A DNA stretch of 64,000 nucleotides. Source: Saccostrea cucullata (taxonomy: Eukaryota). A model generated the notes under the pieces. That model saw nothing but the letters and a program-made list of their open reading frames with translations. It made no database searches and was not told where the DNA came from. This document shows, one piece after another, positions 19,206 to 43,800 of this stretch. A program made the position numbers and the translations under genes. The stretch is from NCBI RefSeq assembly GCF_032062105.1, contig NW_026938938.1, forward strand, positions 744,001 through 808,000, written 5' to 3'. How positions within the stretch are numbered: position 1 is the first letter of the stretch; every line of letters starts with the position of its first letter.

Positions 19206-21431
19206 ATGCCCCAAAAATTGGAGTATGTCACCAAGCAGCCACTTACTCTGGTTTTAATTAGTTCAAGTGCCTTTCTCTGTTTCGTCACAGGTCTGTCTCA
19301 GAGGTCGCAGAAGCCATGTGTCTGTATTTGACACCAAGAAAAACGATTCAAACACTATTAAAACTTAAGTTAACCAATCGAAAAGATTGTCCTAATCTGA
19401 CTTTAAAGGGGTTATCAGATGTAAAAATTGCATTTATGGACTACGATGTACACTTCAATCAATATACAAACTTGCACAATGAACACTGCTTAAAATGTCC
19501 ATACCCGAATAAATGCAATCATGACGGATATATTGTATATAATTCATGAAATCATTTAAACCCTACAGAGAAGGGGACAGACAGACCCCTCCCATATTTA
19601 ATAAAGAATATTCTTCATATCAGAAAGATGCATTTTGTTATATGATGATCTTTGATACAGGGCATCAATGCCAGTCTTATCATAGATTTGTTCTAATATT
19701 ATCATATTTTTTCTAACAGGAGAAATGTTTGTACGTATAAAACCGATAGGATAGAAATGGTACCAACGCGACAGACTTACCGGAGGCCATTTTACAACCC
19801 TCGGCTGTGTTCGAATAATGATACTTGTGTCAACTCCACAAGGTACCTAGCAATTTCTTAAGCACAGTTAGCTCTGGGAAAATAAAGTCTAAAATTCTCT
19901 TAATTTTCATAAAGCGTTTTGGTTTTACCTAAATCTTATTTAGGGTGTACATGAGGATAGCCTATCGCACGGTGTTTTATAAACGTATGGTGCAAGGGGA
20001 ACATAAACGGTGTTGTCCAGGATGGACGAAGAAAAACCCACGTGACATGGCCTGTTTAGCACGTAAGGAGAAATTTTAAAAATACGAATACGTATACAGG
20101 ATGTCTTACTGAACTATTTTAATGTTACAAAATATAAAGAAATAGGATTAGGTCAATCCACCAAGGTTAATGATTCTTAGCCTAGAAATTTGTGAATATC
20201 ATCGCCTTATTTACAGCAATATGCAGATATGGATGTAAAAATGGCGGAATCTGTGTGGGTCCAAACGAATGTGAATGTCCACCATATTACACAGGTCATC
20301 AATGTGAAAAGGGTGAGCATCAAGGCAGCCAATATAAACTCCAAATGTTTCATATTTTACACTCGTGTAAAATATGTGAGCATGATTTTTTCTTTGTCTA
20401 CTGCAGATGTAGACGAATGTTTAACTGGTAGAAGTAGCTGCCAACAGATTTGTAAAAATACCATTGGGGGATACGAATGTGGCTGCTTCCATGGATTTAA
20501 ATCACTAAATAAATACAAGTGTGAATGTGAGTCTTATTACTTAAATGATCTTGTTGTAATGTGTCTGATCGTTACATCACCCATGCCTGTAAAATCATGC
20601 GTTTTTTTCAGTTTGTCCATTGTGTTTACCACCTATAGCAGATATGATGAACAAAATCAATGATTTACAAGGACAACTTAACAAAGTAGAAAAAGAGAAA
20701 GTAAGCATTCTCCTTTCAATCTAGAATGTTACATTAATATTATAATAGCATTCCACCGCAGGTTTATTTATTTTTTATATTTTGCAAAAACACCACATTT
20801 TCTAATCTTTGATTTTTACTAGGATGAGATGCGTGGTAATTTTTCTGTTCTGGAGGGATATTATAATGATGCCATCACCCAAGTAGAGGAACTAAAATCT
20901 GCTTCGTCATCGACCACCGCACCACCAAGCACTACAACAGAGGATCTGTACGACTTTGATATTATTTCCTCTCTCAGTGATCAGATTTCCCAGTTAGAGG
21001 AGAGAATTGGGTCGTGTGAGTACATTTCTTTTTCACTCACTTTGGGTCCCTATCACCATAAGTACCACGTACCTCTCTAGTTATTTCTTTTCATTCCAAA
21101 AGAAAGGAATTATCGAACATGCACATGCATGGCTGGCTAATTATTACAACCCAGTGATGTTAAGTGTAGCTCTCCACTTGATTTGGTCCTCTTGTTTCTG
21201 ACATTGAGAATGTCAAGGAAAAGTGTCTTAATTAGTCATGTGAAAATAATTACTTGTCAAAACTTTGACAAATCCATCTGAGTTTGGCTGTTTATTTCAA
21301 ACGAATCAATGGCATATTTCCAAAATGATTTTCCTTTGGCCATTTTTTTTGGCATAAAAATTGTACACTCCTATATTACAGGTGACTGTGGGAATTCAGG
21401 AAGGAGGTCCAGATACAGATACGGGGGCTGA
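19206..21431 (+). CDS. EGFL7: EGF-like domain protein 7/8 ortholog (signal peptide, EMI, EGF, Ca-binding EGF, coiled coil)
   Basis: Exons: ~19206-19303 (MPQKLEYVTKQPLTLVLISSSAFLCFVTG; donor uncertain), 19720-19842 (RNVC...), 19944-20062 (IAYRTV...RCCPGW), 20217-20312 (ICRYGCKNGGIC...), 20407-20526 (DVDECLTG...), 20612-20700, 20823-21015 (SSLSDQISQLEERIGS), 21382-21431 (CDCGNSGRRSRYRYGG*). The C-terminus matches the EGFL7 motif SLSEQISFLEEQLGSCSC. EGFL7 versus EGFL8 cannot be resolved. Confidence 0.88.
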
Positions 21432-22845
21432 TGGTCTTATTATCACGTGCCTTAATACACACTACAGAGTTTGTCAAATGTCAGGCAGTGGACACATATA
21501 CATAGACTTGTATTGTTTCCACTTCATTTTGGTTGAATTTGATTTTCTTTTTGACTTAAGAAGGAATCAAGGGATATAAATTATTTTAAATATATGAATA
21601 TTGTTATAGTGGATATTAAAGGGATGCTACAGCTCCTTTTTCCATTTCAAATTGTGTTATTTAAGAATCTTGTGTTAATCATATGCCCTTGGACAGAGAG
21701 AAATTATTGTTGACATGTTATTGCATCACTTGATGCTTTCATAAAATGTGTTGTACTAAATAATAGTATTTAAAATATTCAGTTTTTCTACATGTACATT
21801 GCTGCACTTATATTCAGATTTATAGCATGCCATACTATGTAAGAAATGTTGTGTATTACAAATTTATCTTATTTTACCACAAGCAAGCCTAGATTCACAC
21901 AGTTTATAAAAGCATGTATTTATTTTTCCTTTTTAGTTGGATTTTGTACCATAAATCAATTAACAAATAAATACTGATTTTAGTTTTTTATTTGTAAAAT
22001 ATGTACAAGTTCTTGCAATTACATGTATATTCAGCATAATTTTCACTTCAAATATAAAAACCTTTCCTATTAAATTCTTCCCATGTCACGAGAAGTTGAG
22101 ATTCTGCACATAGATGAACCAGCAACCATGTATTGAAATAAAAAATATATAGCACCATTAAGTGAGGTATCTATTGGTGATAAGGAACTACAGATCATTA
22201 TGGTATTCTGACAAGTAGAAGTTGACAGGAGAAGAAAATAAGCTAGTTCTATAGCACAAATACAGGGAAGTAAAGCTTAATCAGAACATTTTGTATCGAT
22301 AAAAAAGAATGAGCTAGAATTCTTCATCAATGTTCATAATTTAGTCAATTCTTACAACAACACTTTACTCTCAGTGTTAGCTCAGAATACACCTAATTCT
22401 AATATTACATGGTATGTTTTAAAACTTAAGACCTTCTTTAATATCTGACAATACATTATTTAAGCTCGCACATTTTCACCTCTTTCTGCACAAATACACA
22501 AAAAATCTTTAAACAAGTTTCAAAATATGTGAAGCACTTCTGTGCAATTTGTTAAATAAGTCCAGTTTTAAGTAGAAGTACATGGAAAAAAAGGAAAACA
22601 AAAAGACGAGATAATCTCAGCATATACAGCCATTACCTGTCACTACTTTTATAAAAAGGCAGGACAATATATTAACAATGAAACATGAAAAGTTAAAAAT
22701 ATATAATGTTAGCACATGAATTGTGAGCAAAATACAATGTATTTTCTTTGATGGTGCAATATAAAACGGATTTCTAAAGGTTTAATGGATTTCTTGAGAG
22801 TTGTGTCCCCTGACATTAAAATTTGAGTTGCAACTCCTGTAGATG

Positions 22846-25800
22846 TCACTTTTTATCACAGGCCTGATTATGGTAGTACACCGAACTCTGTTTCATTGGA
22901 GGACTCTCAGGATCCTGTAATAAATCAAAGATTGACACAAAATATTAAAATGGTTTCTAATATCTCTTCAAATTCTGATGAATTGTATCTAAAATGACCC
23001 TTTATCAAGTTCTCTTGATTAGTCTGAGATTGTAATGTACTTACACTAGTATTCAAGGTTGTAAAATTCTTTTCTTGTTGGCCTTTCCTCTTTCGATACT
23101 AAGAAAAAATAAATGAAAAAAATTGTTACTGACAGAAATTAAGGAGTTTTTTGCATCCAATATATACCAAAAAAACATTAAGGTAAATTTTACAAAAATT
23201 TTTTTACAAAAAACTTACAACAATGAATGCCACAATGGCTATCAGAACAACAACACAAATGACAACTACGACAACTATAGTTGTTGTTGCACTTTCATCT
23301 TTTTCTGCTGTGGGGGATTTAGAAATATCTCCTGATGTCTGAGCTTGGAAGGTAAAGGTGGTTTTAGTCTCTGGTTCTGCTGTTATGGTCTGGCCTTCAA
23401 ACCTCATGTCCAGTCCATTGTTTACCTGATGTAGAAATTTAATTATAATGTACATTCAAATAATAACTGAACCTTCTGCTCAGAATTAAATATTTTATAA
23501 TTTGAAAAATTAAACTTTAAAATTTTGTTTGTTACTTTTTTTTTCCATCTGACATGAGATAATATGAATATGGTTATTTCTCTAGACCTATCACTTTTTC
23601 CTCTAAAAATACTTATCTTTGACTTACCTCATTTTCCAATACATTCACTAGACTTCCTATGTCTTCTGGTTCTGAGTTTTCAGATGTTTGTCCAAACTCA
23701 ATATCAACATATACACTGCCTTTTCTTATCTACAAAAATAAAAAAAATCATTGACTTACATATGCATAACTAACATATAACATATACAGTTGTTTACCTC
23801 TTCGAATATCCACAAACAAAAATAACTTTCCTGGTCTCATAACAAACACACTCTGTCCATCAGCACTTACTTTTATTGTCTTGATATGTTGGATCATTTT
23901 GGGTGATATTTCCTTTAATTTGTCAATCACAACCCTAAAGAAAAGATCAAGTCAGAATTATAAACATAAAGATTAGTGACATATGCTTATACATGTATAG
24001 GTATCTCTAAGACTGTTGGTAATTAAAACATAAGTTTTCAGGCATATCAATATTTAAATTTCTAATTTAATTATTTACTTTGAATCAACACAGGTCATTA
24101 AAATATTTCTTAAATAACAGAAATAATTTTTTACCCTTTAAGCTTTTCTTCTTTTCCTTTGACATACACATCATAATCCAACTTGAATAGCAATGATACC
24201 ATGGCAGACACTGTTTTATTGTGGCCTAAAATTGAATATACACATATAAAATACACATACAGCAATGGACCACAGTTTTTAGTACTTTTCTGTCATTAAA
24301 ATTTTGAGTACTTACTGCAGCCGATATTTTGAGCTGGACCCGAGACCTTTCTCTCTGATCCTGTTAGTTTGTTTCCGAGGCCGTCCACACACCAGCACCT
24401 GTCGGAGGCCGCGTCACACTGCTGGGGAGAGAACTCCCCCTTCACGTCACACACAGATATCGGTACAGACTCTGATACCTTATAATTATACATCTCCTTC
24501 ATCAAAGCTTTGCGCTTTTCTTGTGATCTTCTCAGCTGGCAAAGTGGGGTTACTATAAGATTGATAAAGACCATTGCATGTAGTTGGTAATTCTCAGAAG
24601 TGTAAGATTTAATTTCATGAGGATAATTAAGGTATATTTAAACAAGAAAATGCTCTCTTTGTTAATAAGCGAATAAAAATTTATATATTTATTACTTTTT
24701 TTCTGTTTGCTATTTCCTCAAGATATGAATCATATTATGTACAATATATGACAATACCAGAATCACAGTTCACAGGAACATTGGAAACCAGGTCAAAGAA
24801 CATGACTTCACAGGTGCATGGGTGAATCTGACACTGAGCGGCAGGAAATCGACGACACACCTGATCTGAACAGCTGGTGACGCAACTTTTAGGTCCACCT
24901 CCATTACAGATGGCACCTTAAAGAGTATAATGTATGTATTAATCTCCACCTAAAGATTATTATATGGCTACTTAACTGCTTTTAATTTTTTAAAAATTAT
25001 ACCTACATACAGGATTAAATAGTTAGATGTACACTCTCAGTAAATCTTTGGATCTACTCCTCTGTGACCTACCTATACATTTAGATCTACACTCCCACTG
25101 ACTTTTGTAATAAATATCTTCCCCATCACACGAAGAGAACAGAAAATGTTCACACTCCTTGGCCTGAGCATCAAACACCCATCGTTGTTCCAGATTTCCA
25201 CAGCCTTGTTTATTGCGGGACGTGGAAATGGGCTTCTTCAGTGCACATTTATCAACTACAAAATTTATCAGGATAAAATATTTTTCAACACTATGGTGAA
25301 ACAGTCAATTTTCACAAGGATATAGGAATGCACATTAAATATAAAATTTTGACATATTTACTACAAAAATTGCATATTGATATTGTATGAGATAATAGTT
25401 AAAGTAAGAGCTGGTTACCATTGCATGTGACTGGCTTGTTATTTGTGTCCACAAAGGAGACCTTGCACTTATTACAGGGGTCTACCACACAGGTGACGTC
25501 ACTCCTACCCTCACATTTAGCTGTATCGCACTCATTTTTATCACACAGCACTGGGGCACTGCCATCAGCACATACTGAAATATAGAATATGGTTACAGAG
25601 GGTACTCAATATTATATTGTCATTTCCTAAAGCTTGTAACTTCTAGTGCAAGATATTCTGAGTAATCATGATTTTTATATTTCTTTAACTATAGTGGTTA
25701 AACATACCTGGAACTCTGGAGGCATCACTGGTGTCAGTTACCCCTGTCACTGAAGAAAAGAAGAGAAGGGTTACTTTAAAATTTAAATACAAAATAAAAT

Positions 25801-28800
25801 ATTTTTCATAAGGGACCTGAGTATTCCTAAAACCGTCTACCTGATTTATAATGGATGGTTGCCCACGCTCATTACCTGATTTATACCAGGATGGTTTGCC
25901 CACTCTCATTCAATACCTGATTTATAACAGGATGGTTTGCCCACACTCATTTAATACCTGATTTATAACAGGGCAGTTTGCCCACTCTCATTACCTGATT
26001 TATAACAGGGCAGTTTGCCCACCCTCATTACCTGATTAATAACAGGGCAGTTTGCCCACTCTCATTACCTGATTTATAACAGGATGGTTTGCCCACTCTC
26101 ATTTAATTATAACAGGGCGGTTTGCCCATTTTCATTACCTGATTTATAACAGGGCGGTTTGCCCACCCTCATTACCTGATTTATAACAGGGCAGTTTGCC
26201 CACTCTCATTACCTGATTTATAACAGGGCAGTTTGCCCACCCTCATTACCTGATTTATAACAGGATGGTTTGCCCACTCTCATTTAATTATAACAGGGCG
26301 GTTTGCCCATTTTCATTACCTGATTTATAACAGGGCGGTTTGCCCACCCTCATTACCTGATTTATAACAGGGCAATTTGCCCACTCTTATTACCTGATTT
26401 ATAACAGGGTGGTTTGCCCACTCTCATGGTGTTGGGCTTCATGACCCCGATATCATCTACACACCAACACAGAGATCCCTGACACTGCATCTCAGCAAAC
26501 CGTCCGTCGTCCAAACAATCCGGCACAAAGTTACCATTCACCACAGGCGGGACTTTATCAGCTGTGAAAATGTCAATACAGGAACATTAATGACGAAACT
26601 GCTAGCTCAAAATGATACAGTATAATATTCAGCATTAATTTCTAAATGTATCATTCTTTTTGTGATTCAGTTACATATAAATTGCATCTATTGTAAATTA
26701 GTTGTATTTTCCAGAGTTGTTGAAAACTTTTTCAGATAGCCAGTCATTCGGACTGACAAGAAAACAAACTAAGCTGCTCCTCTTTTTTTTTTTGTCAGTC
26801 CGAAATAGTAAGTCGCAAAATGGAAAAAAGCATAACATTTATTCATTTTATAACACATCTATTTAATAAATAATGTTGTTAATAAAACAAAATTCAGTCT
26901 CCATTTCCAAGTACTCTTCCGTTTTCTTTAATTTTGCATTCATAACAATACGAGATACAATTATACCACCACTTTTTGGCAGATGACAATGCTAACTCAG
27001 TACAGTCAATGTAATTTTTTGAAACATTTATACATTTTGGAATTATATTAACCTAGAAAATGGGTCTAAAAATTCTTTGCATTGATAATCTGATAATAAA
27101 GATATCAACACGATCGGAGAAAAAACGAAAATCCTGGACAGTCGGAAATACTAGGTTAAATGCTTTCTCCACCTGTGCTTGAATTCTTTCTGTTGAAATT
27201 TTTCATATTTAGCTCGTCTTTATCTTAAGTTTTTCTTTAATATGTTTTCTACCTAGCTCGGCCCCAGTTGTGAATTTAATAGGTCACGAGAACCATGCTA
27301 GTTTCGCTTTCATTTACAGCCTCGATCTCGTTTAAAGAAAAAATATTACGTAATCGCATATAAGGTACGATAATTAAGATGGGAAATGCACAAAACAAAA
27401 AACTTTAACCAAATAAGGAGCCGGTCATTTGGACCGACATTGATAGCATTTTTACCGGTCATGCGAATTTTAAGCCGGTTTTGCTGGCATGACTGACAGT
27501 TACCCACAACTCTGATTTTCCCCATATCCTTCATGTAAAATAGGTTATAAAAGCTATTTTCTGTAATCACAGGGTATTGATGAACAACCTATTTTATATT
27601 GTTTTAAAGGTAATCTTATTATTCTTGTATACAAATAAAACATAATGGCAATACAGTTAACAGTTTTTAAAAAGTCTAATGACACAATCACCTTATTTAT
27701 TAGGATAAGGATTACTTCTGAGCAAATTCCTAAGTTCATGAGGAAAATAGTATGTCTTTGAGTATTGTGTCATCTGACCTTGAGCAATAACTTCATCAAA
27801 TTAAGAAGAGAGGTTTGACTTACAGATACACTTTGCCTCAGTGTCACTGACAGGTAAACAAATGGTGCCTGCTGCACATCGGATTTTCTGAAATGAAAGT
27901 AAAAAGCATGCATAACTGCTTTCAATTGCTAAAAATCTCAACCTAAGAGTTTTAAATAATAATATTGCCTACATTTGAGTATATTTACATTTTTTATGCT
28001 TGGTCAAAAAACTAGCATTATGTTTTCTTTCAACAGGGAAGAAGAAAGAAATAATTGATGGCCTTTTAAGTTTAATTCCAGTCACATTCAGCAATGTTTG
28101 GCTGAAAATTTAGTAAAAATTAGCTGAATGGTTCTGTACAAAAAGGAAAGTTTATGGGCTGTATTATGTATATATACATACAGACATTCATAATGTACAG
28201 GTCAAAATGTTCATTGAGCCTATTGTTTGAAATAAGAATGAAATATCTTACCTCACATGGAGCAGCCTGCACATCTCTAGAGCCTGTAAGAAATCAGGTT
28301 GACAATACACAAAAGCATTAGAATTTCAGTATCTCAATCATTGATATTAAGCTCTCTTTCTGACCAATTTCAGATCAAACAATTATTGTATTTATGCTCA
28401 TAAATCTTTTAGTTTGTATGTGATTGTTGTGTACATAATAAAGCTTCATTCCTTTAACAGTACATGTATCTTAATTGTTCCATTGACAAGATAATCATTA
28501 TTAATACTTACTACAGGTACTGAGACACTGTGTGAGGGTTAAGAAACGGTTCCTGTTCCCTTCACATCCCCCATAGTAAAACTTCTCACACTTGTTGCTG
28601 GTAACGTTATAGAAGTACATGGGGATTCGGGCCCGGCATCTGCCTGTATCTGGGTCAGGAAGGCACTGAGGGGGAAGTCCAGCTAAAAGCAAGAGGAACT
28701 CAACATGTAGAGTACGTGGAATCAAAATACACTACCTTTTACATAAAGAAGCATTTTACTCAGGTAGATATTAAAAGAAGATACACTATTGTTGTTATTA

Positions 28801-31800
28801 AGGCAAGAACAACAATTTAGCTGTAAACAGACACAGCTGGGATTTTTTCACTTCTAATTAATTGTATACATATTCAGTACACATAATGATCTTTACTTAT
28901 GTAGAGTAGATCACCATTAGGGTGAACAAACATATAAGAATGTCAAGCTTTCATTCCTTGAAGTTTCAAAATGTATTAAGAACTCTACTAGATACAGAAT
29001 TTTTCAAAAAGAATTAAATTTTTCATTCCTGGAACTTCACCGTCAGCTTTTATACCGTATACTTTTTTCTTTATATTACTTTATATCTAAATTACTTTAC
29101 ATTTTACCTTTTGAGCAAGCCCTCTCACAAGCTTTCTGAGACCCGAAGTTGTTTTCATTGCCTTTACATCCTCCATACACAAACTGTTCACACCTGTTAC
29201 TGGTGGAATTGTAAAAGTGTCGGATCATACGACCCTTACATGGTCCAGTCACAGGGCGGTGGGCACAGGCTGCCTGGTGGGGCAATACTGGGGAAGGAGC
29301 AGGATAAAATAATGGATTAGCAAAATCAATCATAATTGCTATGCTTGGATCTAATATTTTGCTTTCCTTACTTTTAAATCTCAGAAATGTTTTTTTTGTT
29401 TGCTGTTGTTTTAAATTCCAACAACATTTTTCTTAAGCATTTTAAAGTTTTATCAATAGATTCTTACCACTAATAGGAACCTGGCATTTATTGAGACAAC
29501 ATTTACTGGTTCCTTGACAATCTTCGTCTGAGGTACAGTCCTGAGTCAGAGCCTTGACAGCCTTAGGATGTAATCCTAGACACTCCCCGGCCTTACCAGA
29601 GGATATCACTCCTACAAACAATCAAATCAAACAAAATCTGTAGGATGTAATCCTAGACACTCCCCAGCCTTACCAGAGGATATCACTCCTACAAACAATC
29701 AAATCAAACAAAATCTGTAGGATGTAATCCTAGACACTCTCCAGCCTTACCAGAGGATATCACTCCTACAAACAATTAAATCAAACAAAACCTGAAGGAT
29801 GTAATCCTAGACACTCTCCAGCCTTACCAGAGGATAACACTCCTACAAACAATTAAATCAAACAAAATCTGTAGGCAGACCTGCCAACCAAAATTGATGC
29901 TGTGGGGGGTCATGACCCAACATTCAGAATTGAAATGTTGGGTCATAGCGCACGGCGACATTTTTGTTGAGGTTTGAGTAACAAAATGCTCCCAATTTTT
30001 AGGCATCAATGCAAACAGTAAAACACATGCATGTATATGTTATATTTTATTGCAGACTTAATTTTTACTTAGGACAGGTTACTTAAAATTGCTTGTATAA
30101 GAACACTTTCAGATTGATAGTAAGATTCAGATACTTTTTGTTCAATAGAATTTTTGCAAAGTTTTAAAAATTTAAAAAGTTTCTGGGAAACATTTGTTAG
30201 ATTCTACATTAATTTTCAACATATTACACAATCAGAAAATTGTAATTAGACATTACATTGAAAGATTAATATTGAAAAATTGCTGATGCATGGGGTGGTG
30301 GTATATAAGAAATATGTGCCATCTAATTTCCTATTATTAATTTTAAAACACACACAAAAAAAAATTAAATGAATCAAATACTACAAAATAAATTATGAAG
30401 GATACCTAACACCCTAAACAAAAACTTAAAATCATTAGAGTCATGATGTGACTGACAAGTGGGTTTTCCCTTGTCATAGCCATTTAACAAAGAAACACGA
30501 CATACAATACTACATTTTAGGAGGGGGGGGGGGAGAAATTCAATATACTTCACTTTAGACTCTTTTGCTTTATCTTAATTAATATCATTTTCTTATAACC
30601 ACTACACTTAACAATTATTTCAATATACGAGAGCTGATAAAATCAGCTGTTATCAGTTATGCTTTGTAGTTTCGTTTTTTTTACTTTCGTTTTTAAAAAA
30701 CGATCCCAATGTTTATCATATCATTGTATTTAATTAATATCTGTTTTTAATAAAATGATATTTAATTAACCTCTAAATCTATGTTGTTCACCATGCATAT
30801 ACCCCTTCAAATGGTTACGTAATTAATCCCCTAAATGCTCCAGGCATATTACCTGTACAGCTGTGTCATTCTGCGATCAAGCGTGAAGTGATTTCCTGTG
30901 GCTAATTAACAGTTTTTTTAACACCTCGGCAAACAAAGATACTAATCTGTGTGCATTGAATAAACAAAATATTCATATCCTGATTTATAAAACACAAATC
31001 GGAAATTTTAGGATGAATTTTCAGATCTTTCTTGTTGAGACAAATATGCTTAATTAATATTGGGTCAAAAAATTGGGATGATCGATTTTGCGGGTGAAAA
31101 CAATGACACGCCGCGGGTCATTATGAGTGGGGGGTGAGAGGTCAATTTTGCGGGTGTGACCCACCGAATGCGGGTCACTTGGCAGGTCTGCTGTAGGATG
31201 TAGTCATAGACACTCCCCGGTCTTACCAGAGGATATCACTCCTACAATCAAATAAAATCAAACAAAATCTGTAGGATGTAATCCCAAACACTCCCCAGTG
31301 TTACCAGAGGATATCACTCCTACAAACAATTAAATCAAACAAAACCTGTAGGATGTAGTCATAGACACTCCCCGGTCTTACCAGAGGATATCACTCCTAC
31401 AATCAAATAAAATCAAACAAAACCTGTAGAATGTAGTCATAGACACTCCCCGGTCTTACCAGAGAATATCATTCCTACAAACAAACAAAATCTGTAGGAT
31501 GTAATCCTAGACATTCTCCAGCCTTACCATAGGATATCACTCCTACAAACAATCAGGTGACATAACAATGTCTTACATATGATAATTCCAATAAAAACTA
31601 ACTGATTCTATCATTCCTAGCCACTTTTAAGTTATGTTATATTAATTAAATTTCAGAGTAAAGTCTTGAGGTACATGTAAAAAAGCAATTTGCCAACACT
31701 GAGAGCTTACTTTCTGCAGTTGGTAGGACAACCTGCTTCTTTGATTTAACTTGTCCCAGGTATTGCTTAGTGAATCCTACATCTGTGTCCATCCAAAATG

Positions 31801-34800
31801 TGCTCAAAGAAAGGGCCTTCAATCTCATCTTCTCACATCTACTTAAACCTACAAAGGACCAAATTTCAGCATTCTATACAGTTGTATGGAAGACTACCTT
31901 GAACTTAAAGAAAAGTCATGATAAGTTTTTTGTGTACAAAAAAAAAAAGAAAAAATCTAAATATTACCAGAAAAACAGTTGACGAGTGTGTTTTTGTCGT
32001 CGTAGAACTCAGCCTTACAATCACCACATGGGTTGATGCGACATTGAGCTGAGGGATTAGCAGGACAGGAATGGTGGACACATAGGTCCAACTTACAGCA
32101 CTTCGGAGCAGATCCATTAGGGCACACTGGAACAAAGGAAATCCATCTCATACATTTAACTACATGTATATATTTTTTTCCCTTAAATGTTTTGCTCATA
32201 AGTTCATGATAAGTTATTGAATTCAAAATATCTGTTCTTTTCTGACAGTAAATTTTGTCATTCTCCAAAAATAATATGTTTTTAACAGTCCAACTTAATC
32301 AGTTTTAATAAATTTTTATTTATGCAACTTAATTCATGATCAACCTGAGTTCAGACAAATCTGTTTCAATAACACATCCAATCTAATATATCACTAGGTA
32401 ATGGTGCTTTTTGAAAGGTATTCTTGTTTATCTTCCAACCAAGTATGATAAGTAATTTATGTATTTCCCATAGGTAGTTTTCTGGTGATTTTTACCTGTA
32501 TTGATAGGGAGGGGACAGCAGTGGCCCCCCTCACAGGACCAGGTTACCTCCCCACAATCTGCGTCCTTTACACAGGTCATTGACTTGTTGTCCATCATCT
32601 TCACCATTCCGTTATTGGGGCACACAGAAATAGAACCTGAAAATTAGAAAATAAGCACAAACTGTAATATCTATTATCTCCAGTTGTGAACAGATGATAA
32701 GAAAGTTGATACTTTCATAATTGATATATTCTTTTTCTTTATAAACTTGACTGTAATATTAAAGGTGTGTGTACCCGGTTGAGAACAGCAGTATCCCTCA
32801 TTGCAATAATAAGCCCCTTTCCCTGACCCCTGACATTCTATGTTGTCAGTGCAAAGTTTAGGCTGTTGTTTTTCATCTAATAGCAGTCCTCCATTATTGG
32901 GACACACAGCTACAACAAAAGGAATTGACATGATTTTCTAAGCTTTAGACAGAAATGTGTCTCTATTTGATATCAACAGGCTGCTTAAGACATATGCTTT
33001 TTTATTCAACAGAAGAACCTTGATTGGCATCCTTGGGACAGCAGTAGTTGTTGACACAGGAAAACTTTCCACTGGAGCCGATACATTCAAAGTCCATGCT
33101 ACATCTCTTAGGATGACCTCCATGAACCATGACATAACCTTGGTTAGGACACATTTCTGCAAAGAATGTAGAAAATTTATGTAACATAGAATTACACTGC
33201 CTTATTATTTAAATACTGTAGAAGTACTTTTTTACGCGTGGTATTAATTTACGCTCTGAACGCGGTCACAAATTTTCCGCGGAAATTTGTCCCATCCAAC
33301 TTAATGCAAATATAAGGCATATAAGGAGAGTCTTAAGATATCCGCGTAATTTTCTACCAGTGGATTGAACAGAAAAAGAGATTCCGCGGAATTATGACCC
33401 CGTGGAAAAAAGTACGTCTACAGTACCTTCACATCTAGATAATAATCACTAACAGTGTTTGAAAATTGTATGTTTTTTCCTTTGTTGTATATCGATGATT
33501 TTTGCTGAATTTTTTTTATCTTAATGGCAAACAGACAACCAGGAATTTGAAAAGAGAAAAGTTTCATAATCCAGATGAATTTTCAGTACATATAAACTGT
33601 GTTTTATGCAAAATTTTTAGTAAACCTATACCAGATAAAAGAAAATGATTTATAACATACTATTCAAAGTAAATTTCTTGGTATTCAGTGATTACAGTCA
33701 ATTCTCGAATTATCGCCATTCGATTCATCGCCATTTTCGCAATACCGCCATGCTTTCCAAAGAACGTTTTTCCTGCTATATAAAATTCTCTTTATAACGC
33801 CAAATTCGCATACCGCCATCCGCCACCCTGTTTTCACAACAAACGTCCATTTTTAAGTGTCAATTATCTCGATAATACCGCCACAGGTGCATGTGGTCAG
33901 AGAAGCGCGGCTAATTGGTTGACGGTATCCCTGTTGTTACAAAGCATGTAAAGCCAGTCAATTAAGGTACATACAATGAAATTATTAAATAAACAATAAT
34001 TTTAACATGACTGTTAGAATAATTTTGTTTTCTGTTTAATAAAACCATTTAGTCAAGGCTTCGCCTCGAAAGTTGTCGTTGTAAAGTACCGTACGCCGAA
34101 TACGATATTATTTTGATGATCTCTGCTTTCAAAACCAGTGCAAAGATTGCTTAAGAAATAATTATACGTTAGAAATTGTGAACGTTTCATTAACAACAAT
34201 GTCATAAACAATGGATTTATTCAAGAATTTCTTTTTACGTACTATGGGCAATTTATCACGACGATCGACCCAGCATATTTTTTTTCAATATTAAACGTGC
34301 CGATTTACATGCATACACATGTACTTGTCTTTATTTCATAGCTAAATATTTTGTCTTAGTGAAATTTACATAAAAATTACTTGAAGTATTTTCAAATTTA
34401 GAAATATGTTTATATATACATGTATATGTAAAAATAAGAATAGAAACGCTAAATGGTATTTCTAAGAACGATAACTCTACGTCTCATTTCCTAAAAGCTG
34501 GAAAATTCAATTCATCGCCAAATTCGTTATACCGCCGTGATTTCTAAATTACAAAAGGTGGCGGTTTATCGAGAATTAACTGTATAAGCATGGGTGCAAA
34601 TTTAGCTGTGAAAATTTATTCAGGCTACTACATAACTTCTAAAATAAACCAGAGTTAGCACCCTTCTATATGTTATTTCACTAGTTTCACATAAAGTAGA
34701 CCTTAATGCTGTTGAATACCTGTGATGAGAAGTTTTGAAGGACAGCAGTACTTGTATCCATCAATGTTAGAGCTCTGACAGCTATAGGTACTGTCCCCAC

Positions 34801-37800
34801 AGTCCATGGTGGATGAGCATCTCTGAGCATTACCAACAGAGGTCAACAGAGGCATTCCTTTGTTAGGACAAAGTTCTGAAAAATCAAGCCATTTAGATAA
34901 ATCAACAGACTGTCAAATGTGTCCTGAAGGATTCCCCTTCTCTAACAATATGTACCTGAGATATACATTGTCAAATTGTGCATGTCTCCCTCCTCCAAAC
35001 TCAGAATTCTTTAAAAAATAAAACAGCAGAAGCATCCCATTTATTCAATAACAGACTTTGTCCTCAAAGGAAAAAATAAAATCAATTCAGGACCTACCCA
35101 TATTATTAATCCTTGTAGGGCAGCAGTACTTGGAGTCCCCTGACCCTTTACATGCATAGTCCCTGGAGCTGCCACATTCTGACAGTAGGACCCCCATACA
35201 AGCTTTAGGCTTCCCATTCTCCATCAGAGGCAAGCTCTTGTTGGGACAGAAATCTGGAAGAATATTCATATTACCCTATACTAAAAATTTTTAAAAAAAA
35301 TCACTTCAAACTCCAGTCAACATTAATTTTTCCCCCTTTTCCCTAATGTTTATTGTAAATGCTTTTTAGTATGCAGAAGTTATTCCAATTATTAATAAAC
35401 ATTGATGAATCAGCTGAAGATTAACTTAGGAAGATTCTGACCTTCCTGTATTGGCGTTGGGCAACAAATCTGGTTCTCACAGGTAGCTGGTTCCCCACAA
35501 TCACTGGCCACCTTACACGTCTTTGTTAAACCATTCACATTCTTGGATGGATCCGCCCCATTTGAACAGGTTTTCACTTCAACGGAAAAACCAATTTTTG
35601 TAATTTTTTATGAATTTTAAACTCAAAGCTAAAGAAGAAATATATGTGCTACCCATTTTCACAAAACGATTATATCTTAATACTGTTACACCCCTCCCTC
35701 TCTTTTCATTTGTTTGTGGATTTATAATATTCAGTGACTGGTATATTTCACCTGGTGCCACTGTAGTGAGTCCTCCCTTTGGACAACAGTGCCCGTTAAT
35801 ACAGCCAAAACTGATGACATCACAATCCGTGTCCATGTTACACGTCTTAGGAACACCGTCAGACATAAGAACATTGTTCTGGTCAGGGCACAGTCCTGGC
35901 CAAAAGAAAGACATAAAAACTTCTCATTACATTTGTTACTTTTCAAAGTTAAAGTAGTTACTATGACTATCAAAATATAAAGAAAAAATGCATTTTGGTA
36001 CATGTAAACCAATTTAGGAACTCTATTGTATCCTTGGATAAAGAAAATGACTTTCAGTCTTTTAAATTTATTTTTTATCTATGCAATGTAGTTTACCATT
36101 CACATGCATAACCAATGAAATAGTACTAGCACCTGCTCATGCAACAGAATACAGAATGTTTAGGGATAAAAACAATTTACAGCACATGCACACCAAAGAC
36201 TTGAAGCATGATAGTATTGAGGAGTACTAAAAACATTGATTTAAAAGACTTTTGCAGAAGCCTACTAAATATGCTAAAACATAAATATTAAAACCAAGTT
36301 TGGTTTCTGAAAAGATAGAACCCAATGTAAATATTCACAGAAAAGTTAGTACATGTATTTGAAATTGTACTATCACCAGACAAAGACTTAATTAAATATA
36401 GAATCAGCCAATGTCACCACGAGAGATGAGAGCAGAACAGGACAAACTGAGGCACCTACAAAGGAGACCCTCTATACTGATATACCTGCAGAAAATTGGC
36501 AATGCCTCTCAAAAAACTCAGACTCAGAATCAGCCACTTTGGTTAAATGACTAGTGTCAGGGTACTTTGTACATTTTCCTGTATTTTGTTGATATACTAC
36601 CCCGATACAATCACTGATTGTATTACGGTCACAGGCTGCCTTACATGCCTCTACTGAAGGCATGGTCCCAGAGGCTACAGACCCTATATAGGTCACTGAG
36701 GTTGCTATATAACGACGGTATACACAAATTGTTCCTGTAATATAACAGTCAAGGCACATTTAACTTCTAAAAAATGTATGTGGTTTATTTCATACTAAAG
36801 CAAGTTTTTGATTGCTTTGACGTGTCAATGCTGTTTTTGTTGTTTTGTTTTTGTTTGTTACTTATCAACATAGTTTAAAAATAAAAACATGCAAAACAAT
36901 GAAATTCAAAAAAAAAAATCAACATCCAATAATATAAGAAAAAAAGTAAATCATGCATAAAATCAATGTGCATAACAATAACTCCATAATCTCCATAAAA
37001 ATCCACACTCCCTTAAAAACATTTGTTTTCTCACTTACCCTCATTTAATCTGGTGGGACAGCAGTAACCATTTTCACAGTGGAAGGTAGAACTAGCGCAT
37101 GTCCCCTCACCATCACACTGCACTTAGTCGTGGATTTGTAGCCATCAACTTTACACTGATATTCTGAGATATCTGAAATCATTTAGAGTTGTCTCCCTTA
37201 ATCTAATCGACAATAAACTCCCTTTCATTTTTTTAACTACAATATTTAAATATTTTTGCTTGGATTTTTAATAATAGTGTTGTAAAATTAAGATTTTCCA
37301 AGACTGCCATTCTGCCACAACTGTTTCATATTTGGATCTTTAACTAACTAAAAACAATTATGGTCAACTAATTTATGAACTGGGTAGGAAATGGGATGAC
37401 TCAACTTTTTTTTATAATTATAAAATAACATTCCGACATCACCTGCATATAGTGTCATGTCTCCCAACTGATTTGATTAACAAAAGCAAGATGATCAACT
37501 TTTAAATTGAGGCAAGCTACTGACAAACAAGCTGCTGTTATGAGGATTTCAGCCACTCCTTTTGAGTCAGCTTTTTGCTAATTTTCTACAGTCATCATAA
37601 TGCCCTTGTTTTTAATTAAATGCAACCTTTCATTTGGTTATATTTTACCAACATGTTACATACCATTTATCAAGTCAATAATTTTTTTTTTTACATAATT
37701 TGGTTACAGGGTACTGATCTATCTACCTGATCAACACATAAGGCTTACATTGGGTGTGACAGGGATGCTAACTCCCCCTAGGCATCTGATCCTACCTCTG

Positions 37801-40800
37801 GTATTTCCAGGGTTTGTGGTTTTGACCTGTTCATGATTTTGTTCATTGGATTTATGAGATTGATCACTGTTTGTGACCTTCACCTTTTACATCTTGGTTG
37901 GTGACATAACATACGACCAGGAGTCCTCATCCTGACCCCTGTTTTTTCATAATTAATGGTGTAAGAAGAGTAAAATAACTATAATCTTTTTTAATAAAAA
38001 AGCTTGGCTGGCCCTTTTATTTTAGATAAATATATAAGCTAAATACATGTACCACCTTTAATTAACCTTGTAGGACAGCAGTAGCCATTTTCACACTGGA
38101 AGGATCCACTGGCACAGTTTCCCTCTTCACATTTGGTTGTGGTGCGGTAATTATCAGCTTTACAGGTGTAATCTACAATTCCTGAAATACAGATATTCTA
38201 ACTCAAATAATGGACAAAAAAACAATAAAAAATTCTTCTTCAAATGTATTGCAAACATTCTTCTTTAGTGGTTATCATATTTTAGCACTTTTCTTAACAA
38301 AATTCCTGTACATGCTAATATGAAATAACAAAACAAAAACATGTTTCAAGACTCATTTTTAAACTTAACACTTGAAGAAATTCTATATTTTATCTTTTCA
38401 CATTGTGATAGTTTCCAATATTAGAACAGAGAGACACAATATATATCAAAGAATATATATAAAATGTAAAATAATGTGGTATCAACCTCAGATAATTACA
38501 GTATATTATGACATGTTTCAGTAATAAAATTACACCACTAAATATTAAAGTTCTTTTTATGGTACTTATTTCCATATGTCTGACATTTTTAATTTGCTCA
38601 TGGATTTTCTTAACATCAGCTAAAATACTGTATACAGGGTTATTTTTGCCTCTTTGCCCTTGCCAACAATTTTTCGCCTTTTAATTTTGCCCTGTCACAA
38701 TTCTGTTTAAGATAACTTAAATTGTGCTATTAAATTCACCCAATTTTTTAATTTGCCCAAATGTGATTAGGGCGAAAATAAAATGGGGGCGAATTTTCCC
38801 TGTATACAGTAGTTGTTTTAGATAGTGCTCACCTGAGCCAGAGTTGACAGGAACATGACAACAGGATCCTTGTAAACACTGCAGACCTGGTGGACAAGCC
38901 TGGCCATTGTTACAGAATGATGTCACCTGGTATCCAACTGGACATTTCTCAACTGTTAGAAAATCAAATTTCACTTCCTTAAATTATATTCCTTTATACA
39001 AGACAGTGAGTCTTCTATATGGGTCTACAGGTAAGGGTCCAATAATCATATTTCATCAATACTTTTGAAAAACTATGGCTTGCTGAATGTGGACTATGAC
39101 TCCAGTTTCAGACATTATACCATCCAAATAGCTTACTTTATAAAGAAAGATTGCAACCTTTAGTGACACTCACAGGATCACTAATTATATAACTGACCCT
39201 ACGACAAAAAAATCTTTTAATGGAAAACAGTGCCTCCTTGAAAAAATGAATGCTTACCTGACATAGGAGGACAGCACCACTGAGTGACAGGGTCACATAT
39301 AGACCCCTGAGAGCAGGTATTGGCATTGGTCCTACACTCTGTAACTGGGACAAAAAGTGGATCATAGGTGCAGCGGGGATTTGCTGTAAAAATAAAGGTA
39401 TGTTTAAAACTACAGTCATGTCAAAGTGTATCACTGCACTTACTGTTCTATGTATACAGCCTCATACTGAAGTTGTACTGTGTCTTAATTTATTGTTCAG
39501 AAAAGGTCTCTCTTGTACTAATTTATGAACATTGGCATTTAAAGACAGTTAATACACTAAAGAGCAGTTGATCCAAATGGTGTCAGTTTACATGAAAAAA
39601 AAAATTGAATAAAACTTGAAGAAAATCATTTTAATACATGGTCCATGTATTCTTATCCCCGATAACCAACAAAAATTCTTGACTTACTGTCTCTTTTCTT
39701 TCTTGTTGTCAAACCTTCAAAACAAAATAAAAAAAATAATATCTTTATACCTAAAAATCAATACTTTTAGAACAAATTGAGATACCCTAAAACACTCTTA
39801 AATTGAACACACTCATAATGAACTGATGCTTAGAGGGAAGTGATTATAATTCCCTACTTGACTTTAAAATACATTGAAAACTTAATGAACATAAAAAATT
39901 ACATTTATAATGAAGCTAAATCGTCCATCCTTGGCAGTTTGATATAAGCAAGTTTTACTGTACAGAGTTTTACATACTGTTTTTACCAACAGGCCCCATA
40001 CAATGATAACCACACCCATTGGAGCAGCATTTCTGGTCGCCTTGACAACTGTCGTCTGATTGACAGGTCTCCATACAGCGAAGATCTATCGCTGGTAGAC
40101 TGGTGTAGTGTGGACACACACCGGGTTTGGTTGCTGCCATAAAGAATTTAAATTTAATTCTATAAACTTAAAATAAACTCAAAATTAAATTGATCCATTG
40201 AGTTCATTTATGTTTAATAATCATCCAGCATCCCTACCATAACTTGAAATAACACTGTTTTAAATCCAGAATAGTTAACATTTCATGCAGCATTTAAAAT
40301 CAAGAGTGTTTTGAACATCAAAAATGCATACCCCTGGAACAATCTGGATTTCCTCTCACTTCTGTCCCTGGAATTTTTGTTCCATTTTGGAAAACACAAA
40401 AGCACATGCCGTTGTGATCATAACATTGTGTTCTTTCATAATTCCCTTTAGAATCACACCTATATAAAGTTACGATTTTAAAAAGATGTAAATTATTAGG
40501 AATTTAAAGATAAAATACATTGTTCATACGTACAATAAAATACATGATACACATTTTGAATTAAGATATTTTGCTCTGATCTTCCAGTTACTGTAAAAGT
40601 ACTTTTTTGCACGTGGTATTAATTTACGCTTTGTACACGGTCACAAATTTTCCACAGAAATTTGTCCCAGCATACTTAACATAAATGCAAGGCATATAGT
40701 GACAGTCTAAGAAATCCACGTAATTTTCAACCCGCGGATTAAACGGAAATTGAGATTCCACGGAATTATGACCCCATGGAAAAAAAGTATGTCTACAGTA

Positions 40801-43800
40801 ATATAAAGCTTACTGGACTATCAGATGAAAGCTAGACAAAGTTTACTGTGCTGTTATTAGGGGAACTTTGACATAAAATTTCAATTAAAATCAACCTGAC
40901 GTACTGACCTTGGAATAAAGACAGGGTTACAGCTGTCCACCTGAGATAAGACTTGTAGAGAGGCGGCCTCTAGTTCTCTCTGGCACGGGGTCTTCTCTTC
41001 TGTTAAATACAATATACAGTATAACAGAAGAAGTCATCAAAATGACAGTGCTTATTAACAAAACCTTAATGAAGCTGAAATAGTATTGCTTTCCAAAGTT
41101 CTAACTCATTTTAAATTACAAGGTATACATGTACATATAATACCTGGCGGTGAGCAGACATGGATTCCACATTCACTCCTACAGCACAGCTCTGAGGTTG
41201 GACAGTCATTGTCAGTCTTACAGCTAGGGACGTCCATCTGTCCAATACACACACCTCCTAGGTTCTTCAGACTCAATGGACATTTACCTGCCTTTTTAAC
41301 TGCATAAAATATTGTAAATGTATAATATCTTTTGAGCAGATTATAATTTTTGATCTCTTCAAGTAAAATAAAATTATCATTATATATATGATAATCCCTT
41401 AATTAACATTGTATGCAGTAATGATGACACATTGTTATTATGAGATGAAATTTATTTTGACATAAGAACTCTGAATGGCTAAATTATGTTTAATAGGTTT
41501 TTAAAAACAAGCCCTATTTATACATTTAATCAACATGTTTACGGAGTGTACCAGTATTGGCTTACCTGGTTTTTGACAGGTGTGACCACACCCATTAGAA
41601 CAGCACTTTAGATCCGCTCCACAAGAACTGTCATCTGAACACTGCTCAACACATATCCCTACCGTACCGCTGGCCACTGTCGGACAGGATCCTGTAAAAG
41701 TGTACAAGATATTCTATCTATAGTGTCCTGTAAAAGTGTACAAGATATTCTATCAATAGTTTCCTGTAAAAGTGTACAGGATATTCCATCAATAGTTTCC
41801 TGTAAAAGTGTACAGGATATTCTATCTATAGTGTCCTGTAAAAGTGTACAAGATATTCTATCTATAGTGTCCTGTAAAAGTGTACAAGATATTCTATCTA
41901 TAGTGTCCTTTAAAAGTTACAAGATCTTCTATCTATAGTGTCCTGTAAAATTGTACAGGATATTTTATCTATAGTGTCCTGTAAAATTGTACAGGATATT
42001 CTATCTATAGTGTCCTGTTAAAGTATATAAGATATTCTATCAACAGTACAAGATTCTATTAATAGTGTCTTGTAAAAGTGTACAGGATATTCTATCTATA
42101 GTGTCCTGTAAAATTGTACAAGATATTCTATCAATAGTGTCCTGTAAAGTATACAAGATATTCTATCTATAGTGTCCTGTTAAAGTGTACAAGATATTCT
42201 ATCTATAGTGTACTGTTAAAGTGTACAAGATATTCTATCAACAGTTTCCTGTGAAAGTGTACAGGATATTCTATCTGTAGTCACCTGTAAAGGTGTACAA
42301 GAGTCTATTATTAGTGTCTTGTTAAAGTGTACTAGATATTCTATCAATAGTTTCCTGTAAAAGTATACAGGATATTCTATCTATAGTGTCCTGTAAAGGT
42401 GTACAAGATTCTGTTAACAGTGTCTTGTTAAAGTGTACTAGATATTCTATTAATAGTGTCTTGTTAAAGTGTACAAGATATTCTATCAACAGTATGTGTA
42501 CAGGATATTTATCAATAGTTCCCTGTAAAAGTGTACAGGATATTCTATCTATAGTGTCCTGTAAAGTGTACAAGATATTCTATCAATAGTGTCCTATAAA
42601 AGTTACAAGATATTCTATCTATAGTGCCCTGTAAAATTGTAAAAGATATTCTATCAATAGTGTCCTGTAAAGTGTACAAGATATTCTATCTATAGTGTCC
42701 TGTAAAAGAGTACAGGATATTCTATCTATAGTGCCATGTAAAGGTGTACAAGATTCTATTAATGGTATCTTGTAAAAGTGTACTAGATTCCAATAGTGTC
42801 TTGTTAAAGTGTACTAGATATTCTATCAATAGTGTCCTGTAAAGTGTACAAGATATTCTATCTATAGTGTCCTGTAAAAGTTACAAAATATTCTATCTAT
42901 AGTGTCCTGTAAAAGTTACAAGACATTCTATCAACAGTTTCCTGTAAAGTGTACAAGATACTGTAAACCAACTTTTATTCGCGACGACTTTTTTTCGCGA
43001 TTAACCAGGGATAAACTAGTTTGCGACGATTAATTTTCGCGATCAAGCATTTTTGCATCTGTTTTTAATAGACAAATATACTATAAGGTTTCCTAGTCGC
43101 GATGAAGTGAACTTACGCGAATAAAATATTCTATCTATAGTGTCCTGTAAAAGTGTACAGGATATTCTATCTATAGTGCCATGTAAAGGTGTACAAGATT
43201 CTATAAATGGTGTCTTGTAAAAGTGTACTAGATATCAATAGTGTCTTGTTAAAGTGTACTAGATATTCTATCTATATTCTATATTCTATCGTGTAAAAGT
43301 TACAAGATATATTCTATCTATAGTGTCCTGTAAAAGTTACAAGACATTCTATCAACAGTGTCCTGTAAAGTGTACAAGATATTCTATATATAATGTCCTG
43401 TAAAAGTGTACAGGATATTCTATCTATAGTGCCATGTAAAGGTGTACAAGATTCTATTAATGGTGTCTTGTAAAAGTGTACTAGATATCAATAGTGTCTT
43501 GTTAAAGTGTACTAGATATTCTATCTATAGTGTCCTGTAAAGTGTACAAGATATTCTATCTATAGTGTCCTGTAAAAGTGTACAAGATATTCTATCTATA
43601 GTGTCCTGTAAAAGTTACAATATATATTTTATCAATGTCCTGTAAAGTGTACAAGATATTCTATCTATAGTGTCCTGTAAAGTGTACAAGGCCATTCTAG
43701 TATTATCTACTGACATTTCCTGAACTTTTCATTAATAATAGGAAAATACCAAAGGATTATAAGAAATTGCCAATTTTCAATAATAGTATAGGGAAAATCA

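Follow-up and report, generated by a model that had tools for sequence, protein, structure and literature searches.

EpCAM and Trop2 rank among the major carcinoma markers and drug targets, and loss of EPCAM leads to congenital tufting enteropathy. In both proteins (Pfam EpCAM_N, Thyroglobulin_1 and EPCAM-Trop-2_C) a type-1A thyroglobulin (TY) domain is followed by a Cys-free SEA-fold domain, a single transmembrane (TM) helix and a short cytoplasmic tail that starts with basic residues. The C-domain of EpCAM is a divergent SEA domain without the GS-phi-phi-phi self-cleavage motif, and no sequence outside its own family is significantly similar to it (PMC7349879); EpCAM has been described as unique to vertebrates (PMC7563481). 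The same order of parts occurs at the 3' end of a large gene of the oyster Saccostrea cucullata, on the minus strand of a stretch of 64,000 nucleotides (contig NW_026938938.1, positions 744,001 to 808,000) that was analysed as a whole and is called the window below. The segment 22846-36734 of the window is the 3' part of this one gene, and we consider it probable that the product is a type I membrane protein in which an array of inhibitor-type modules sits on a TY-SEA-TM cassette nearest to the EpCAM/Trop2 core, most likely through shared ancestry. A literature search for an invertebrate relative of the EpCAM core found no paper, and the invertebrate cassette would supply an evolutionary origin for EpCAM.

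Gene model and single transcript

The window DNA is AT-rich and eukaryotic, and its minus-strand open frames between 22.8 and 57 kb encode a long run of Cys-rich peptides. A whole-library HMMER search with the membrane-proximal TY exon (24317-24550, minus strand) as query retrieved the product, P0009, an S. cucullata protein of 1,837 amino acids that agrees exactly with the window across 44 exons. P0009 and its sub-ranges were the reference for all spliced-protein searches; otherwise the window was searched exon by exon. The NCBI name is 'LOW QUALITY PROTEIN: zonadhesin-like [Saccostrea cucullata]', the gene being automatically annotated but uncharacterised. The overall extent of the gene is as follows.

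22849-57073, minus strand: whole coding span of 44 exons over ~34 kb, from exact mapping of P0009; stop codon at 22846-22848
57014-57073, minus strand: exon 1, with the start codon and the signal peptide MWGGTVWRCFFIGLISVVYG, recognised by inspection of the hydrophobic N-terminus

With the start codon at 57073, the segment 22846-36734 covers only the 3' 60% of the gene. The initial annotation had described this segment as a PAN domain and two Kunitz domains joined to an EpCAM-like ending. All peptides that it quoted (TY QQCDAASDRCWCVDGLG, HNKTVS...TITAEP, TM IVVVVVICVVVLIAIVAFIV, YRKRK, GPCKG and GRCRA) are encoded on the minus strand where it placed them; the stretch and its domains are thus real, but the gene is larger, with a third Kunitz domain (25071-25256), a third TY domain (40333-41000) and four WAP domains besides.

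RNA-seq reads from three oligo-dT runs, together with one set of RNA contigs, were aligned to 22800-28799, where junction reads supported fourteen introns of the GT..AG type (read as CT..AC on the plus strand). Junction reads from the three runs connect every exon from Kunitz 2 (about 28511-28684) to the last coding exon, in the order Kunitz 2, two micro-exons, TY, a 42-nt micro-exon, a module with eight cysteines (8-Cys), Kunitz 3, 8-Cys, the membrane-proximal TY domain (TY2), three small exons, the TM exon and two tail exons, and the Kunitz 2 and TM exons occur together in a single 4,654-nt RNA contig. A loose end at 28684 continues into the final codons of the exon for Kunitz 1, and a script check found the frame open across the joined Kunitz 2-to-tail exons. 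The reads are 95-99% identical to the window, which indicates that they come from other individuals of the same species label. Because the contig and the spliced reads join Kunitz 1/2 through the TM helix and tail, the Kunitz, TY, juxtamembrane, TM and tail exons belong to one transcript.

The same reads and contig contradict the idea that annotation merged two or more genes, namely a secreted Kunitz/WAP inhibitor and a small EpCAM-like TY-SEA-TM gene; the concern in the initial annotation that the Kunitz and TM exons might lie on separate transcripts is likewise dispelled. The LOW QUALITY flag and the 2-nt skip of the model at 37118-37119 could be taken to favour such a merger, whereas the full-length architecture is shared by four other oyster species. 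Moreover, word searches found no TY-X-TM protein of 115-486 amino acids, X being the juxtamembrane domain described below: a 278-residue C-terminal piece searched against candidates of 153-486 amino acids returned nothing, and with the TY+X alignment the only matches were TY fragments and exon-length parts of oyster orthologues, with no EpCAM-sized invertebrate protein and no EpCAM. We give the merger practically no credence.

The flag itself is explained by a frame break in the assembly:

37037-37173, minus strand: Cys-module exon with a frame break at 37118-37119, reading ...KSTTKC, then 'AG', then CDGEGTC...; the NCBI model skips 2 nt

At the matching point the orthologue of S. echinata has an unbroken KSTTQCDGEMAC, so the window seems to have about 5 extra bases; the break may stem from an assembly error, represent an allele or be a real lesion. 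The oyster orthologues are 92% (S. echinata, C-terminal region), 77% (Ostrea edulis), 72% (Magallana gigas) and 71% (Crassostrea virginica) identical to P0009; their automatic names differ ('zonadhesin-like', 'papilin-like', 'notch homolog 4-like') and none has been characterised.

The TY2-X-TM cassette and its relation to EpCAM and Trop2

The membrane-proximal end of P0009 consists of the following parts, in N-to-C order.

About 24314-24553, minus strand: TY2, a type 1A domain with six Cys (Thyroglobulin_1, 49.6 bits) on a symmetric phase 1-1 exon
23300-24223, minus strand: domain X (P0009 1644-1770), with a predicted EpCAM-C-like SEA fold; exons 24134-24223, 23871-23933, 23625-23729 and the first part of ~23219-23422
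23715-23720, minus strand: codons of G1698-S1699 (RKG, then SVYVD) at the predicted β2-β3 turn, a putative SEA-type self-cleavage site
23219-23290, minus strand: TM helix (TTTIVVVVVICVVVLIAIVAFIV; P0009 1774-1797), from the sequence of P0009
23045-23098 and 22849-22914, minus strand: cytoplasmic tail of 40 amino acids (YRKRKGQQEKNF...VYYHNQACDKK) on two exons

X is an alpha/beta domain of ~115 amino acids without Cys. Introns fall in phases 2, 0 and 0 inside X, in phase 0 after the TM exon and in phase 0 inside the tail; the oyster cassette has seven exons from TY to stop, the same number (in count only) as EPCAM, where these are exons 3-9 (PMC6328345).

All fold comparisons of X use AlphaFold2 models. 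Modelled alone (mcd413faa7919), X reached a pLDDT of 83 and a pTM of 0.74, with a predicted β-α-β-β-α-β core and extra C-terminal strands. Foldseek against the PDB placed EpCAM/Trop2 at ranks 1-7 (E = 2e-4 to 2e-3; TM-score 0.66-0.70; root-mean-square deviation (r.m.s.d.) 2.5-3.3 Å), with the first canonical SEA domain, MUC16 SEA5, at rank 15 (TM-score 0.32). The exhaustive VIA search of 48,161 representative chains gave Trop2 a Z of 12.4 (112/118 residues, 2.9 Å), ahead of SorCS2 (9.7), Cas6 (9.5), MUC16 SEA (8.1, 4.7 Å) and IA-2 (6.5), and in the ESM Atlas two EpCAM clusters reached TM-scores of 0.76 (r.m.s.d. 2.0 Å) and 0.71 compared with 0.55-0.57 for SEA clusters. Furthermore, a model of TY2 and X together (pLDDT 69) superposed on Trop2/EpCAM as one body (Z 12.0-13.5, 166-174 residues, 3.3-3.8 Å).

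Sequence profiles point in the same direction. A TY-only profile scored EpCAM at 32.5 bits and a TY+X profile at 53.6 bits (E = 2e-13), with a single alignment between profile positions 13 and 187 (residues 55 to 225 of the chain); the addition of X thus brought EpCAM a gain of ~21 bits, while other single-TY proteins (p41 and IGFBP-3/-5) dropped by 1-3 bits. A profile of X preceded by only the TY tail after CWCVD aligned with EpCAM colinearly over the whole C-domain (E = 0.14, 15.2 bits) and reproduced the pairing that the initial annotation had drawn by eye. At E ≤ 10 this profile had three PDB matches, the third being the unrelated CheB (E = 0.077), so that the EpCAM match would be non-significant as a blind search and may be called notable for a target named beforehand. 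The oyster-EpCAM alignment is colinear at 15-17% identity, and a single hemichordate sequence aligned to EpCAM for ~85 residues past TY into the C-domain (E = 6.6e-6). No canonical SEA chain appeared in the PDB-sequence searches with TY+X, with the TY tail and X, or with the hemichordate sequence. By predicted structure, and more weakly by sequence profile, X is therefore a SEA-fold domain specifically closest to the C-domain of EpCAM/Trop2, in line with the proposal that the juxtamembrane region is nearer to these proteins than to generic SEA domains.

Canonical SEA domains (MUC1, MUC16, enteropeptidase and agrin; PF01390) share with X the β-α-β-β-α-β order, the juxtamembrane position and a G-S-(V/I) motif at the β2-β3 turn, which in the X model lies between strands 48-54 and 57-65. 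They differ in that X has no PF01390 match and in that their fold match is weaker than that of EpCAM/Trop2 (Z 8.1 versus 12.4; TM-score 0.32 versus 0.70). With EpCAM/Trop2, X shares the extra C-terminal strand (oyster TFTFQ in the place of EpCAM TLIYY) in addition to the order of domains. The parallel with EpCAM drawn in the initial annotation stands for the order of TY, fold and TM helix, but it does not extend to the G-S pair (RKGSVYVD), which EpCAM lacks (PMC7349879), or to the Pfam models EPCAM-Trop-2_C (PF21283) and EpCAM_N (PF18635). The proteins also differ in size (314 amino acids for EpCAM, 1,837 for the oyster protein), and the third 8-Cys module of P0009, immediately before TY2, occupies the place of the EpCAM N-domain. 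Lacking PF21283 and EpCAM_N and carrying a GS motif, the oyster protein is not a member of the EpCAM family by Pfam criteria.

Local iterative hidden Markov model searches, run among the proteins that the searches had returned, found X in 11 proteins, each time directly after a TY domain and before a TM helix: in five oysters, Pecten maximus, Haliotis rufescens, Physella acuta, Plakobranchus ocellatus, the hemichordate Glandiceps talaboti and the coral Montipora capricornis. In all 11, X begins ~3 residues past the last Cys of TY, and its only invariant columns, across 11 sequences and three phyla, are the Gly-Ser pair followed by V/I. The TY-X-TM cassette is therefore conserved in Mollusca, Hemichordata and Cnidaria, which agrees with the suggestion of an ancient module and differs from the vertebrate-only distribution given for EpCAM (PMC7563481). 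In molluscs, hemichordate and coral alike it sits on WAP/TY inhibitor arrays. A six-frame search of the 1.17-Gb oyster assembly with the X profile found this locus only, so that at exon-level sensitivity the gene shows no paralogue; a corresponding six-frame search of the oyster genome with PF21283 gave two non-significant matches, both elsewhere. Arthropod and nematode TY membrane proteins show weak juxtamembrane similarity (E from 1.5e-4 to above 1).

On balance we think that the TY-X-TM cassette and the EpCAM core share descent. The alternative is that the oyster TY-SEA-TM ending arose by exon shuffling, separately from EpCAM, and that the resemblance reflects the shared fold of the SEA superfamily, the packing needs of TY against SEA and AlphaFold memory of EpCAM. 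TY and SEA-fold domains both belong to the mobile extracellular modules, and a SEA domain is often found beside a TM helix. Several results that weigh against shared descent fit this account. Neither PF01390 nor PF21283 (cut-off 25.9 bits, model confirmed in the searched library) matched X in P0009:1640-1770 at E ≤ 10 or in seven family members at E ≤ 1, and exon-by-exon Pfam scans of the juxtamembrane exons gave TM noise only. The X-only profile found no EpCAM chain and nothing meaningful among PDB sequences at E ≤ 10, so the sequence signal is weak and partly reliant on the TY anchor. The TY2 sequence is nearer to the TY domains of thyroglobulin, saxiphilin and IGFBP than to that of EpCAM, and its symmetric phase 1-1 exon is of the shuffling type. 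X has the canonical GS motif that is missing from EpCAM, and language-model features in the atlas place it nearest to canonical SEA (PF01390) clusters (0.77-0.79, to be taken as a lead only).

Further points count against the reading of P0009 as a membrane-anchored inhibitor with an EpCAM-related cassette. Because the EpCAM structure was in the training set of AlphaFold2, the program could be reproducing it, and the input alignment of the models comprises only 11 sequences. Addition of X to the TY profile raised Trop2 by only ~4 bits. EpCAM_N did not match P0009:1510-1565, a region taken up by the 8-Cys module, and the cytoplasmic tail, whose sequence is conserved within oysters only, is unrelated to that of EpCAM. 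Inhibition and self-cleavage are predicted from sequence features, and the assembly has its frame break upstream at 37118-37119.

Separate assembly has nonetheless to face the top rank of EpCAM/Trop2 in three structure libraries, by a clear margin over canonical SEA domains that AlphaFold2 also saw; the gain of ~21 bits on addition of X, seen for EpCAM and for no other TY protein; the hemichordate sequence that aligns into the EpCAM C-domain; and the occurrence of the cassette in a deuterostome. We regard it as unlikely, although credible.

If descent is shared, the history of the family may be taken one step further, to a scenario that we hold tentatively and with slightly less than even confidence: the TY-C-domain-TM core of EpCAM/Trop2, rather than being a vertebrate invention, would go back to the membrane anchor with which a pre-bilaterian family of polyvalent protease inhibitors (WAP/TY, with Kunitz added in molluscs) was tethered to the cell surface and whose SEA fold was self-cleaving; losing both the inhibitor array and the Gly-Ser site would have produced EpCAM. 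X would then be the missing link from canonical SEA domains to the divergent EpCAM C-domain, and would hint that the original role of EpCAM was protease control at epithelial surfaces. As an outgroup, the cassette could separate ancestral traits of EpCAM (TY/SEA packing and juxtamembrane proteolysis) from derived ones (lost self-cleavage, the N-domain and the PKC-binding tail).

Three additional observations concern X and related domains. In Foldseek, part of bovine thyroglobulin (7n4y_A, E = 1.6e-3, TM-score 0.56, 152 columns) also matched X, and the VIA alignment with SorCS2 (Z 9.7) falls on the membrane-proximal domain of that protein; these are possibly further SEA-like domains in TY-rich or juxtamembrane contexts. 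The abalone protein P0090 (Haliotis rufescens) has a canonical SEA domain (PF01390, 41.3 bits) at 227-298, near its N-terminus, plus the C-terminal X, which shows that two SEA-type domains coexist in one protein and are separable by Pfam. EpCAM is a cis-dimer; a homodimer prediction for TY2+X, made without controls, scored 0.14 (mark 0.32) and gives no verdict either way.

Inhibitor modules and the proposed link to HAI proteins

Some 35 small disulfide-rich modules make up the ectodomain, and many are of protease-inhibitor types. P0009 comprises a signal peptide, four WAP, three Kunitz and three TY domains, one PAN domain, ~16 small 6-Cys repeats and three 8-Cys modules. From the N-terminus, the signal peptide is followed by five 6-Cys repeats, WAP, WAP, TY, WAP, four Cys modules, PAN and seven Lustrin-cysteine-like repeats; then come 8-Cys, a 45-residue exon, WAP, Kunitz 1, Kunitz 2, a 4-Cys stretch, TY, a micro-exon, 8-Cys, Kunitz 3, 8-Cys, TY2, X, a Ser/Thr-rich linker, the TM helix and the 40-residue tail. 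Besides TY2, the Pfam-recognised inhibitor-type domains and the PAN domain are these.

41567-41689, minus strand: WAP (the three upstream WAP domains score 46.4, 33.4 and 51.5 bits)
41145-41300, minus strand: WAP
40908-41000 and 40333-40458, minus strand: first TY domain, Thyroglobulin_1, 51.6 bits
39976-40134, minus strand: WAP
36484-36732, minus strand: PAN/apple exon, PAN_1, 27.9 and 28.5 bits (cut-off 21.4)
29469-29609, minus strand: fourth WAP, 29.1 bits
29109-29288, minus strand: Kunitz 1 (TGPCKGRMIRHFY, GPCKG), P1 = Lys, Kunitz_BPTI, 69.3 bits
About 28511-28684, minus strand: Kunitz 2 (TGRCRARIPMYFY, GRCRA), P1 = Arg, Kunitz_BPTI, 69.5 bits, with spliced reads on both sides
About 26394-26561, minus strand: second TY domain (TY1), Thyroglobulin_1, 46.7 bits, with RNA joints
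25071-25256, minus strand: Kunitz 3, atypical, Kunitz_BPTI, 38.5 bits, with Gly at P1 and FSSC replacing YGGC

Such an array would be tethered to the cell surface by TY, X, the single TM helix and the short basic tail. Kunitz 1 and 2 have Lys and Arg at P1 and are therefore predicted to have trypsin-like targets; by analogy with their relatives they would block trypsin-like serine proteases, and the WAP domains may either inhibit elastase-like serine proteases or serve as antimicrobials. TY domains inhibit papain-like cysteine proteases in the p41 fragment, equistatin and testican, and those of P0009 may do the same. Since the invariant G-S lies at a strained β2-β3 turn, X is probably autoproteolysed between G and S in the manner of SEA domains, giving two non-covalently held chains; a two-chain X would allow the inhibitor array to be shed by force or by a second protease cut. 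Combinations of WAP, Kunitz, TY and Lustrin-cysteine modules within a single chain are familiar from WFIKKN, eppin, papilin, testican/SMOC, equistatin, saxiphilin, SmCI, C. elegans MLT-11 and Lustrin A, whose TY and Kunitz units have known inhibitory roles. To our knowledge, these compound inhibitors are secreted or matrix-bound, whereas the oyster family is membrane-anchored via the TY-SEA-TM cassette. For mollusc biology the family would represent conserved, expressed, membrane-anchored compound protease inhibitors, plausibly part of epithelial defence.

The modules might instead be spacers or binding units of a structural or adhesive surface glycoprotein, of mucin, zonadhesin or papilin type or belonging to a shell or mucus matrix. 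The orthologue names would suit such a role, as would the Gly at P1 of Kunitz 3 and the roughly half of the modules (6-Cys repeats and 8-Cys) that have no known inhibitory function. However, Kunitz 1 and 2 retain the full BPTI signature along with Lys/Arg at P1, four WAP and three TY domains score above Pfam cut-offs, and the same inhibitor-type modules are found again in distant members of the family, which makes a purely structural or adhesive role distinctly improbable.

A more specific proposal in the initial annotation was that the fusion of Kunitz and PAN domains with the EpCAM-like part records an ancestral coupling of EpCAM with the HAI-type matriptase inhibitors HAI-1 and HAI-2 (SPINT1 and SPINT2). 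Two Kunitz domains with basic P1, the PAN domain and the EpCAM-like cassette do share one transcript, as it had read them, and a vertebrate EPCAM-SPINT2-matriptase link is documented (PMC6328345). Like the oyster protein, HAI-1 and HAI-2 are type I membrane proteins with basic-P1 Kunitz domains. The similarity ends there, in that the oyster protein lacks MANEC, the internal PKD-like domain and LDLa, and the HAI proteins lack TY, WAP and SEA-fold domains. Against the PDB, Kunitz 1-2 matched SmCI (7.6e-39), TFPI (4.6e-26) and boophilin (1.4e-24) above HAI-1 (1.3e-22), bikunin (3.8e-22) and BPTI (~1e-16), so these Kunitz domains are generic BPTI-type and not specifically HAI-like. In P0009:600-700, PAN_1 and PAN_4 were the only matches at E ≤ 10, with no MANEC, and a full-length Pfam scan of P0009 gave no Ldl_recept_a, leaving no LDLa between the Kunitz domains.

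Nor is the Kunitz and PAN combination the ancestral context of the cassette. The hemichordate member has WAP, antistasin and four TY domains and the coral member eight TY and four WAP domains, both without Kunitz or PAN, which indicates that the conserved context is the WAP/TY array; among members of the X family, Kunitz domains are confined to molluscs. The PAN exon is kept in the Ostrea, Magallana and Crassostrea orthologues, unlike the annotated S. echinata protein (P0151), where its absence may reflect exon skipping or an annotation gap. Long multi-module proteins mix many domains without implying pairwise interaction, and a fusion in one lineage is no evidence for an interaction between EpCAM and Kunitz inhibitors. 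The oyster gene adds no evidence for the EPCAM-SPINT2-matriptase link, and an ancestral coupling of this kind is very improbable.

Other modules and neighbouring features

The remaining coding features of the gene are Cys-rich modules, most of them on single small exons.

49557-49679, 47624-47737, 47306-47422, 44452-44568 and 44147-44269, minus strand: five small 6-Cys repeat exons (CPGGNP..C..D..C....FC..G.CCP), from exon mapping
39259-39381, 38831-38953, 38057-38179 and 37037-37173, minus strand: four small Cys-rich module exons, from exon mapping
35753-35893, 35443-35577, 35099-35254, 34721-34876, 33020-33157, 32773-32910 and 32497-32634, minus strand: seven Lustrin-cysteine-like 6-Cys repeat exons, from Pfam and exon mapping
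31966-32127, 25420-25575 and 24759-24914, minus strand: three 8-Cys modules (C-x7-CC-x4-C-x4-C-x7-C-x4-C-x2-C-x15-C), one exon each
31712-31846, minus strand: coding exon of 45 amino acids (LSRCEKMRLKALSLSTFWMDTDVGF...), without a Pfam match
About 28252-28282 and 27824-27887, minus strand: two micro-exons with a short 4-Cys follistatin-N-like stretch, from RNA joints; the domain name is by inspection only
25709-25750, minus strand: 42-nt micro-exon (VTGVTDTSDASRVP), present in the RNA contig and in some reads

Pfam assigned few of these modules. The five N-terminal repeats gave only weak DUF7107 matches under the cut-off (E = 0.02-0.05), a scan of the four Cys-rich module exons found nothing above cut-off, and the Lustrin_cystein cut-off was reached only at 34706-34912 (28.5 versus 27 bits), the other six repeats matching more weakly or not at all. 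The 8-Cys module (~52 amino acids, with ...C-x4-C-x2-C-x-(A/V)-x-F-x-D...V-x-C) belongs to no Pfam family, one weak ADAMTS_CR_3 match (E = 0.06) apart, and an atlas feature search gave no lead. By eye, the likeness of the exon at 31712-31846 to a TY domain is limited to the first helix; the exon may be a decayed half-TY. The evidence for the 42-nt micro-exon is a joint 25574>25708 and 39 letters between 25577 and 26394 in the RNA contig. An open frame at 25688-25909 (minus strand) that includes this micro-exon duplicates the end of the TY exon (MRVGKPSWYKSGNERG... versus MRVGKPPCYKSGNKSG at 26365-26586), which fits intronic repeats copying splice junctions.

At 41662-43487 and 45235-46886 (minus strand), introns contain tandem repeats that yield long spurious open frames, built of DTIDRISCTLLQ units and GMDTTRLASDAGSDL units, which lie outside the coding sequence. 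On the plus strand, an open frame at 20229-20663 has a calcium-binding EGF-like motif (DVDECLTGRSSCQQICKNTIGGYECGC), which indicates that a convergent neighbouring gene probably lies ~2 kb past the 3' end of the P0009 gene.

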